Positions 49,484 to 49,564 of a stretch of 64,000 bases of DNA are shown one piece after another. The stretch lies in NCBI RefSeq assembly GCF_000007005.1, contig NC_002754.1; one strand, given 5' to 3'. Numbering within the stretch: position 1 is the first letter of the stretch; each line of letters starts with the position of its first letter. A model generated the notes under the pieces. It saw only the letters and a program-made list of their open reading frames with translations, had not been told where the DNA came from and did no database searches. This DNA comes from Saccharolobus solfataricus P2. Lineage in GTDB: Archaea; Thermoproteota; Thermoprotei_A; Sulfolobales; Sulfolobaceae. Made by a program: the position numbers and the translations under genes.

Positions 49484-49564
49484 TCGAACATATGTTCGAC
49501 CAAATAAAAAGTTTTTTATTAGCCAAAAGTTTTTATACCAGGTTACTATACGAACATATGTTCG
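49484..49564. promoter_or_regulatory. Divergent nadB/nadA promoter with two palindromic operators
   Basis: TCGAACATATGTTCGA at 49484-99 and CGAACATATGTTCG at 49551-64, each ending 3-5 nt before a start codon; TATA-like TTTTTAT elements between them. Confidence 0.8.

Follow-up and report, generated by a model that had tools for sequence, protein, structure and literature searches.

In bacteria it is known how NAD synthesis is regulated, namely by NadR, NiaR, and NrtR. The last of these is released from DNA by ADP-ribose. We know of no member of the bacterial NadR and NiaR families in Sulfolobaceae. The general kind of element that we propose here, the operator of a metabolite-controlled repressor at the promoters of cofactor biosynthesis genes, is well known, both from bacteria for NAD and from Archaea for riboflavin and thiamine. 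The archaeal cofactor regulators RbkR (riboflavin) and ThiR (thiamine) were found by a comparative approach like the one used below (PMC5397151). The question on which the present locus bears is how hyperthermophiles set the rate of de novo NAD synthesis. NAD is heat-labile, and organisms growing at 75-85 C must therefore continually replace it.

The nad locus of Saccharolobus solfataricus

We analyzed a stretch of 64,000 nucleotides of the chromosome of S. solfataricus P2, hereafter the window, in which nadB (minus strand) and nadA (plus strand) diverge from a gap of 87 bp that contains two palindromic boxes. The features of the locus are the following.

46826-47197, minus strand: DUF302 gene (Pfam DUF302)
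47239-48066, minus strand: nadC, quinolinate phosphoribosyltransferase (Pfam QRPTase_N and QRPTase_C)
48063-49481, minus strand: nadB, L-aspartate oxidase, 472 aa if begun at the ATG of 49481 (Pfam FAD_binding_2, E = 5e-73, and Succ_DH_flav_C)
49484-49499, no strand: nadB-proximal putative operator box TCGAACATATGTTCGA, a 16-bp perfect palindrome
49504-49511, minus strand: nadB TATA box TTTTTATT, as read from the sequence, preceded by an A-rich BRE-like stretch
49530-49537, plus strand: nadA TATA box TTTTTATA, as read from the sequence, preceded by AAAAG
49550-49565, no strand: nadA-proximal putative operator box ACGAACATATGTTCGG, whose perfectly palindromic part is 49551-49564
49569-50504, plus strand: nadA, quinolinate synthase, 311 aa (Pfam NadA, E = 4e-105)

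The nadB-proximal box reads tcgaacatatgttcga at 49484-49499 and is palindromic over all of its 16 bp. The nadA-proximal box reads acgaacatatgttcgg at 49550-49565, i.e., a-cgaacatatgttcg-g, and its perfect palindrome is restricted to the inner 14 bp. Both boxes contain the 14-mer CGAACATATGTTCG, which makes up positions 49551-49564 exactly, and their centers are 66 bp apart. An earlier, sequence-only reading of this DNA had reported two perfect palindromes, of 16 and 14 bp and 66 bp apart, and had judged a chance origin very unlikely; both statements are borne out, since the 14-mer occurs twice in the window, against 0.00 times expected from 100 dinucleotide-preserving shuffles. Outside of the two boxes, the 64 kb of the window contain no GAAC-N4-GTTC, and a search of the window that allowed up to three mismatches returned zero additional sites.

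Each box had also been placed between a TATA element and a start codon, and the TATA boxes at 49504-49511 and 49530-49537 fit this arrangement. The nadB TATA box and the nadB-proximal box are separated by 4 nt, and another 2 nt lie between this box and the nadB ATG. On the other side, the nadA TATA box is followed after 12 nt by the nadA-proximal box and this, after a further 3-4 nt, by the nadA ATG. The center of the nadB TATA box is ~26 nt from the ATG at 49481, a distance compatible with a leaderless transcript if transcription starts where this geometry predicts. The nadA TATA box is kept in three other nad loci (L028, L004, and L029) and was found in every aligned nadA promoter.

The gene calls around the gap are consistent among strains. 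The NadA protein is identical in the S. solfataricus genomes LT549890.1 and CP033235.1, and the start codon of nadB (CAT at 49479-49481, read on the minus strand) corresponds to a 472-aa gene call that other strains also carry. The nadC gene overlaps the stop of nadB by 4 nt and is therefore co-transcribed with it. In the Saccharolobus lineage, the operon of nadB and nadC likely has the DUF302 gene as its third member; this gene also follows nadC in L028 and L029. Instead of nadC and DUF302, it is a Nudix gene that comes after nadB in Acidianus, Stygiolobus, and S. acidocaldarius. The Nudix gene encodes 150-174 aa in Acidianus ambivalens and Stygiolobus caldivivus, where the nadB-Nudix pairs occupy L111, 10001-11915, and L112, 10001-11895, respectively; in S. 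acidocaldarius, where it also adjoins nadB, it is Saci_0550 (PMC10311068). Given the nadB-Nudix order, the Nudix gene is probably governed by the same operator as nadB.

Two further sets of neighbors recur around nad genes. A conserved protein of 116-120 aa, with no Pfam match, is encoded directly upstream of nadA in most Sulfolobaceae (for example, L005, 5622-5972; L001, 5600-5962; L108, 9618-9974), and the nadA TATA box is embedded in the last codons of this open reading frame (ORF). Genes encoding MFS transporters adjoin nad genes in Sulfuracidifex (L110, 8793-9914), Vulcanisaeta (L113, 3811-5016), and Saccharolobus (window, 45273-46463). These three transporters have generic MFS matches only, lack detectable mutual similarity in tblastn searches with the window protein, and none of their genes is boxed; they could be transporters of pyridine precursors.

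Conservation across Sulfolobaceae

The sequence-only reading had proposed searching for the motif upstream of nad genes in relatives of S. solfataricus. We gathered nad loci from a scan of species-representative genomes, from a scan of metagenomes, and from look-ups of individual orthologues; the metagenome scan with NadB contributed only two Sulfolobales contigs, the remainder being bacterial. The motif is indeed conserved. We found it at 25 promoters of nadA or nadB, in 20 genomes or contigs of Sulfolobaceae. It immediately precedes nadA in 18 of these (17 besides the window) and nadB in 7 (the window, L028, L004, L029, Sulfurisphaera tokodaii L109, A. ambivalens L111, and S. caldivivus L112). 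The consensus of the box is YCGAACAYRTGTTCGR, of the form YCGAAC-N4-GTTCGR. Among the organisms that carry it are S. acidocaldarius, where it reads TTGAACATATGTTCGA, S. tokodaii, Acidianus hospitalis, A. copahuensis, A. ambivalens, Stygiolobus, Candidatus Aramenus, and Sulfuracidifex metallicus.

The organization of the nad genes varies among these organisms. The nadA and nadB genes of S. tokodaii converge and have separate promoters, with one box each. In Acidianus, Stygiolobus, and S. acidocaldarius, nadA belongs to a conserved cluster beside a CobT-like gene and the nadB-Nudix operon lies elsewhere in the genome; the promoters of the two unlinked genes are both boxed wherever they are visible. 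Since the box is found at nadA and nadB whether these genes are adjacent or distant, it follows the genes and not the locus. In a comparison of the four divergent nadB-nadA regions, both boxes, both TATA boxes, and the distance of 66 bp stand out as preserved among positions that drift. The site is thus conserved in orthologous promoters across genera amid divergent flanks, as is expected of the operator of an archaeal repressor.

The box also has phylogenetic limits. It is absent upstream of nadA in three contigs of Acd1-like Sulfolobales (L009, L011, and L023), upstream of nadB in one lineage (L010 and L120), and from the closely related nadABC genes of the outgroup Vulcanisaeta. Its presence in Sulfolobaceae and its absence from Acd1-like Sulfolobales and Vulcanisaeta suggest that it is a trait of the family Sulfolobaceae.

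Specificity and extent of the proposed regulon

We built a symmetrised weight matrix from 13 sites and used it on ~437 kb of Sulfolobales DNA, comprising the window, 25 loci, and two unrelated regions of S. solfataricus reached through copies of ISC1217. The nad sites score between 16 and 28, with the exception of one visibly decayed site (10.9), and the best match away from nad genes scores 13.6. Hence, each match with a score of at least 16 in these ~437 kb precedes nadA or nadB. No box was found in the two new 21-kb regions of S. solfataricus, nor, in the scanned loci, before the genes of NAD synthetase or NAD kinase in S. acidocaldarius, before those of NMN adenylyltransferase or nicotinamidase in Stygiolobus, or at the suf genes beside nadC-nadA in S. 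tokodaii (L109).

These results uphold, across the family, the tie between the boxes and the genes of de novo NAD synthesis that had been proposed from the window, where it could be seen at a single pair of promoters. Of the broader scan suggested at the time, which was to include nad, salvage, and DNA-repair genes, the part concerning nadA and nadB turned out positive, and the parts concerning nicotinamidase and repair genes turned out negative in the ~437 kb. As far as is visible in this amount of DNA, the regulon comprises nadA and nadB, which encode the two committed steps of the de novo pathway, and whichever genes share their transcripts (nadC with DUF302, or the Nudix gene). Since the scan covered fragments of genomes, the regulon could exceed nadA and nadB, and the factor that binds the box could be a global one.

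Two observations made during these searches concern other sequences. The ISC1217-family transposase gene of the window (32169-33233; DDE_Tnp_2, E = 8e-181) lies between the pyruvate kinase gene and a DUF202 gene. The insertion is the same in several S. solfataricus genomes, and identical copies of the element occur elsewhere in those genomes. A second sequence, AAGAACATGTGCTCGG, recurs ~11 kb from nadB in contigs of soil bacteria (L045, L058, L063, L065, L076, L085, and L089). We rejected it as an operator: its matrix score is moderate, but it lies inside a conserved coding region.

Position of the box and proposed mode of repression

The promoter alignment included 23 promoters, seven of them of nadB, plus two more. 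In all seven aligned nadB promoters the box adjoins the TATA box, and 1-6 nt separate it from the ATG. In nadA promoters, 7-13 nt lie between the end of the TATA box and the box, which either overlaps the ATG or has it within ~9 nt downstream. The usual distance between the center of a TATA box and the start of transcription is about 26 nt. Judging from this TATA-to-ATG geometry, the nadB transcript would be leaderless, with the box covering about -19 to -3, and the nadA box would overlap the transcription start. Because the gap between TATA and box varies from 7 to 13 nt in nadA promoters, part of the box may be transcribed in some species, as a portion of a short 5' leader.

A dyad at or downstream of the TATA box, and over the predicted start, has the placement of archaeal operators that occlude the promoter, such as that of RbkR. 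When archaeal regulators such as MDR1, Phr, and TrmB are bound at this position, the recruitment of the polymerase is blocked, whereas activators bind upstream of BRE/TATA. The location of the box between TATA and start therefore leads us to read it as the operator of a repressor. It had been suggested from the window that a repressor bound at the boxes would block initiation, and the relative positions of TATA, box, and ATG throughout the alignment are what such a repressor would be expected to use.

With these data, we consider it likely that the boxes are the operators of a Sulfolobaceae-specific regulon of de novo NAD synthesis, bound by a putative dimeric repressor. In the mechanism that we propose, a dimeric sequence-specific DNA-binding protein, possibly of the winged helix-turn-helix (wHTH) type, would recognize the dyad YCGAAC-N4-GTTCGR with one subunit per half-site, the 4-bp center acting as a spacer. 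The box would fill the space between TATA and start at nadB, or overlap the start at nadA, such that the bound protein would leave TBP/TFB on the TATA box and prevent the recruitment of RNA polymerase or the opening of the promoter, a mode of action usual among archaeal repressors. In S. solfataricus, one box would control nadB-nadC-DUF302 and the other nadA. When the two genes are unlinked there is a single box per promoter, which suggests that one dimer per promoter would be enough.

Expression of nadA and nadB and the candidate signal

Published expression data show that nadA and nadB are co-regulated in S. acidocaldarius. RNA-seq revealed that both genes are jointly up-regulated in the mutant lacking the Nudix gene Saci_0550, and again in the double knockout of the two ADP-ribose pyrophosphatases; other NAD genes are unaffected (PMC10311068). 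In the single Saci_0013 mutant, nadB (SACI_RS02620) is unchanged. In S. solfataricus, nadA (SSO0998) is among the few genes with higher expression at 80 C than at 70 C, with a log2 difference of 1.99 (PMC2797409).

The deletion of Nudix genes and growth at 80 C should each raise ADP-ribose or drain NAD. Such conditions fit a repressor that is released by ADP-ribose or loaded by NAD or one of its precursors. The signal would most likely be NAD status. Our preferred guess, by analogy with bacterial NrtR, NadR, and NiaR, is that the repressor might be released by ADP-ribose, the breakdown product of NAD, or else be loaded by NAD or by one of its pyridine precursors. Both the RNA-seq and the temperature data are indirect on this point, and are also open to other explanations.

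One such explanation is that the box is a genuine operator, but that its factor senses Fe-S or oxygen stress, temperature, or the supply of aspartate, or is a broader regulator. NadA is an Fe-S enzyme, its gene rises with growth temperature, nadC-nadA adjoins suf genes in S. tokodaii, and the scan covered a small fraction of any genome, all of which would suit this explanation. We nevertheless find it unlikely, because the box is missing from the suf genes of L109 and from any other gene in the ~437 kb, because the only genes that carry it encode the two committed steps of the de novo pathway, and because the perturbation of ADP-ribose hydrolases raises exactly nadA and nadB (PMC10311068).

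Search for the cognate regulator

Among the nad loci that we examined, no plausible regulator gene is consistently linked to the box. This agrees with the sequence-only reading, which had seen no obvious cognate gene next to the palindromes of the window: the leads that adjacency provided (PadR, MarR, an ORF with a HEPN fold, and the Nudix protein) all failed. The gene of the regulator is probably unlinked to the nad loci.

One lead was the PadR-family gene of the window (46456-46767), since the repressors of this family are dimers with a wHTH and have small aromatic acids as ligands, and since an MFS-PadR pair adjoins nadB-nadC-DUF302 in S. solfataricus, L028, and L029. However, a shared-word search, which may miss distant orthologues, found those of this protein only in Saccharolobus, S. 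tengchongensis, Sulfurisphaera javensis, and a few metagenome-assembled genomes. This range is much narrower than that of the box, which is also found in S. acidocaldarius, Acidianus, Stygiolobus, Sulfuracidifex, and others, and PadR is therefore an unlikely cognate regulator. Moreover, there is no box upstream of the MFS-PadR operon, and the gene is broken in this strain and yet both boxes are perfect. We conclude that it is very improbable that the neighboring PadR is the repressor.

The nearest regulator to the boxes had been described as a frameshifted PadR, and the comparison with other S. solfataricus strains is in agreement with this: the gene has a +1 frameshift, with eight A at ~46743-46750 against seven in CP033235.1 and LT549890.1, which truncates the C-terminus. 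The A8 allele of this region (46456-46840) is also present in the run SRR10574337, and the intact protein has 114-127 aa. A second strain-specific frameshift lies in the gene of a glycogen-debranching enzyme (43392-45235; GDE_N/GDE_C). It lacks 2 nt near 44975 and encodes 544 aa, against 614 aa in other S. solfataricus strains.

Other candidates were rejected on diverse grounds. The MarR gene directly downstream of nadA in S. metallicus is lineage-specific: among 1.84 billion representative proteins, the only close match to its product is that protein itself, and the next one is 36% identical. The 116-120 aa protein encoded upstream of nadA has an AlphaFold model (pLDDT 96.5) that is predicted to adopt the fold of HEPN/HepT toxins (TM 0.80-0.85), which is not a DNA-binding fold; the R-x4-6-H motif usual for HEPN was not seen on reading the alignment of this ORF. 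The 48-aa RHH gene before nadC in S. tokodaii and the ArsR gene in the locus of S. metallicus have no homologues near nad genes elsewhere. The Nudix protein has a NUDIX domain only, with no wHTH, and does not qualify as an NrtR-like regulator. Finally, the ancestral cluster includes, two genes upstream of nadA, a PF0610-like gene encoding a wHTH and a Zn-ribbon. This gene is widely distributed among Archaea and has no box at its promoter; we found no literature on its function, and its proximity to nadA makes it a weak candidate.

Anatomy of the site

The variation among the 22 distinct sites provides information on what recognizes the box. Positions G3, A4, A5, G11, T13, and C14 are invariant and positions C6, A7, T12, and G15 are rarely changed, whereas the four central bases are variable (ATAT, ATGT, ACAT, ACAA, AAAA, TCAA, and others). 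The half-sites are one helical turn apart. Covariation between the arms (0.069) does not exceed that of shuffles (0.080), and changes in one arm go without compensation in the other. The near-invariance of GAAC/GTTC, the variable center, and the lack of compensation point to the dyad operator of a dimeric protein, and not to an RNA hairpin.

The palindrome could in principle form such a hairpin at the 5' end of the transcript and act on its stability or translation: a stem of 5-6 bp is possible, and at some nadA promoters the distance of 12-13 nt between TATA and box would put the start inside the box or just before it. This is highly improbable in view of the stems, which never co-vary and whose outer positions are often non-complementary, of the absence of any family match in an Rfam search of the region, and of the nadB promoters, where the TATA box abuts the palindrome and the predicted start comes after the box, which would then not be transcribed.

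Likeness to LexA operators

Many of the orthologous boxes fit CGAACRNRYGTTCG, the consensus of Firmicute LexA (Cheo) operators; papers on bacterial SOS boxes use the same strings. In the window the box is identical to it, letter for letter, as had been pointed out before: both boxes contain CGAACATATGTTCG and fit the consensus. From this likeness the sequence-only reading had drawn the possibility of a LexA-like regulator or of a relic of horizontal transfer, and this part of it did not hold. To our knowledge, Archaea lack LexA. In the window there is no box at the genes of the XPB-type helicase, reverse gyrase, and topoisomerase VI, and none was found at the Y-family polymerase gene of L111, at the RecA-superfamily ATPase gene of L120, or before any other repair or replication gene in the ~437 kb examined. 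The Pfam-annotated flanks of the examined loci encode no Peptidase_S24 or LexA-like product. The UV-inducible promoters of Sulfolobus use a different element, A(N)TTTC, which is not palindromic and is located at -39 to -44, upstream of the core promoter (PMC5817253).

The origin of the genes gives the same answer. The closest relatives of NadA and NadB are found in other Thermoproteota and not in Firmicutes, which therefore gives no support to an import from the latter, and Vulcanisaeta, whose nadABC genes are closely related, is without the box. Furthermore, ArsR/SmtB repressors use the same GAACA-NN-TGTTC core (PMC8790569). This core is thus common to unrelated proteins and does not identify the one that binds it. 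That the boxes are true LexA/SOS operators, either bound by a LexA-like protein or imported with the nad genes from a Gram-positive bacterium, is the least probable of all the explanations and is nearly refuted; the likeness is coincidental.

Comparison with known regulatory systems

The box offers a sharply defined handle of 16 bp, in organisms that are genetically tractable (S. acidocaldarius and S. islandicus/solfataricus), on the control of NAD synthesis at high temperature. The literature that we searched, subscription journals excluded, contains no description of the motif and no archaeal NAD regulator. Together with the family-wide and nad-specific distribution of the box, this supports the earlier suggestion that the palindromes may belong to an undescribed archaeal regulator of NAD synthesis.

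Gram-positive LexA (Cheo) operators and the 12-2-12 operators of ArsR/SmtB share the GAACA-NN-TGTTC core with the box, but they control bacterial SOS or metal genes, and here the controlled genes are nadA and nadB. The ArsR/SmtB 12-2-12 operator is a 26-bp repeat with a TGAACA-NN-TGTTCA core and AATA/TATT arms (PMC8790569). The 23 aligned nad promoters show no conservation of these arms. Unrelated families of DNA-binding (wHTH) proteins thus converge on the GAAC-N4-GTTC dyad, which calls for caution when naming regulators from the likeness of motifs.

RbkR and ThiR resemble the present system in having lineage-specific palindromic operators at the promoters of cofactor biosynthesis genes, including in Sulfolobales (PMC5397151). 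They differ from it in being fusions of an enzyme and a wHTH, whose genes carry or neighbor the operator; we found no such fused or autoregulated neighbor here. The window does encode, at 3187-4391, a convergent pair formed by a DUF357 and cytidylyltransferase-like gene (226 aa) and the gene of a CTP-dependent riboflavin kinase (175 aa; 3864-4391). The latter has an N-terminal extension of 50 aa and may be an RbkR-like kinase and regulator. Neither gene of the pair carries a box of the nad type.

The system proposed here follows the logic of NadR and NiaR, in which a metabolite-loaded repressor acts at the promoters of nadA and nadB, often a divergent pair. The sequence of the box is different from that of their operators, which is TGTTTA-N6-TAAACA for NadR and has a TGT/ACA signature for NiaR, and in the vicinity of the archaeal nad genes we saw no protein of the HTH-NMNAT or HTH-3H type. 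The box had been described as unlike the motifs of NrtR and NiaR; the operator sequences confirm this, and extend it to NadR.

Palindromic operators at NAD biosynthesis promoters, and the tie of a Nudix gene to nad genes, are also features of the NrtR regulon, and the expression of nadA and nadB in S. acidocaldarius responds to the perturbation of ADP-ribose metabolism (PMC10311068). Yet the NrtR operator is a 21-bp palindrome with a GT-N7-AC core, whereas the box has 16 bp with CGAAC-N4-GTTCG. NrtR associates a Nudix-like domain with a C-terminal wHTH, whereas the linked archaeal Nudix proteins have 150-175 aa and the Nudix domain alone: the one encoded after nadB in A. ambivalens (174 aa) matches only NUDIX, at residues 21-130, the copy of Stygiolobus has 150 aa, and no Nudix protein of S. 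acidocaldarius has an HTH (PMC10311068). The hosts also differ, being here Archaea with TBP/TFB promoters. It is conceivable, with a chance that we put slightly short of even, that the box is the cis-element of the first archaeal NAD regulon to be described, and that its repressor is specific to Sulfolobaceae, comes from a family new to NAD, and senses ADP-ribose or NAD status, thereby linking the thermal breakdown of NAD in hyperthermophiles to its de novo synthesis, as an independent analogue of NrtR.
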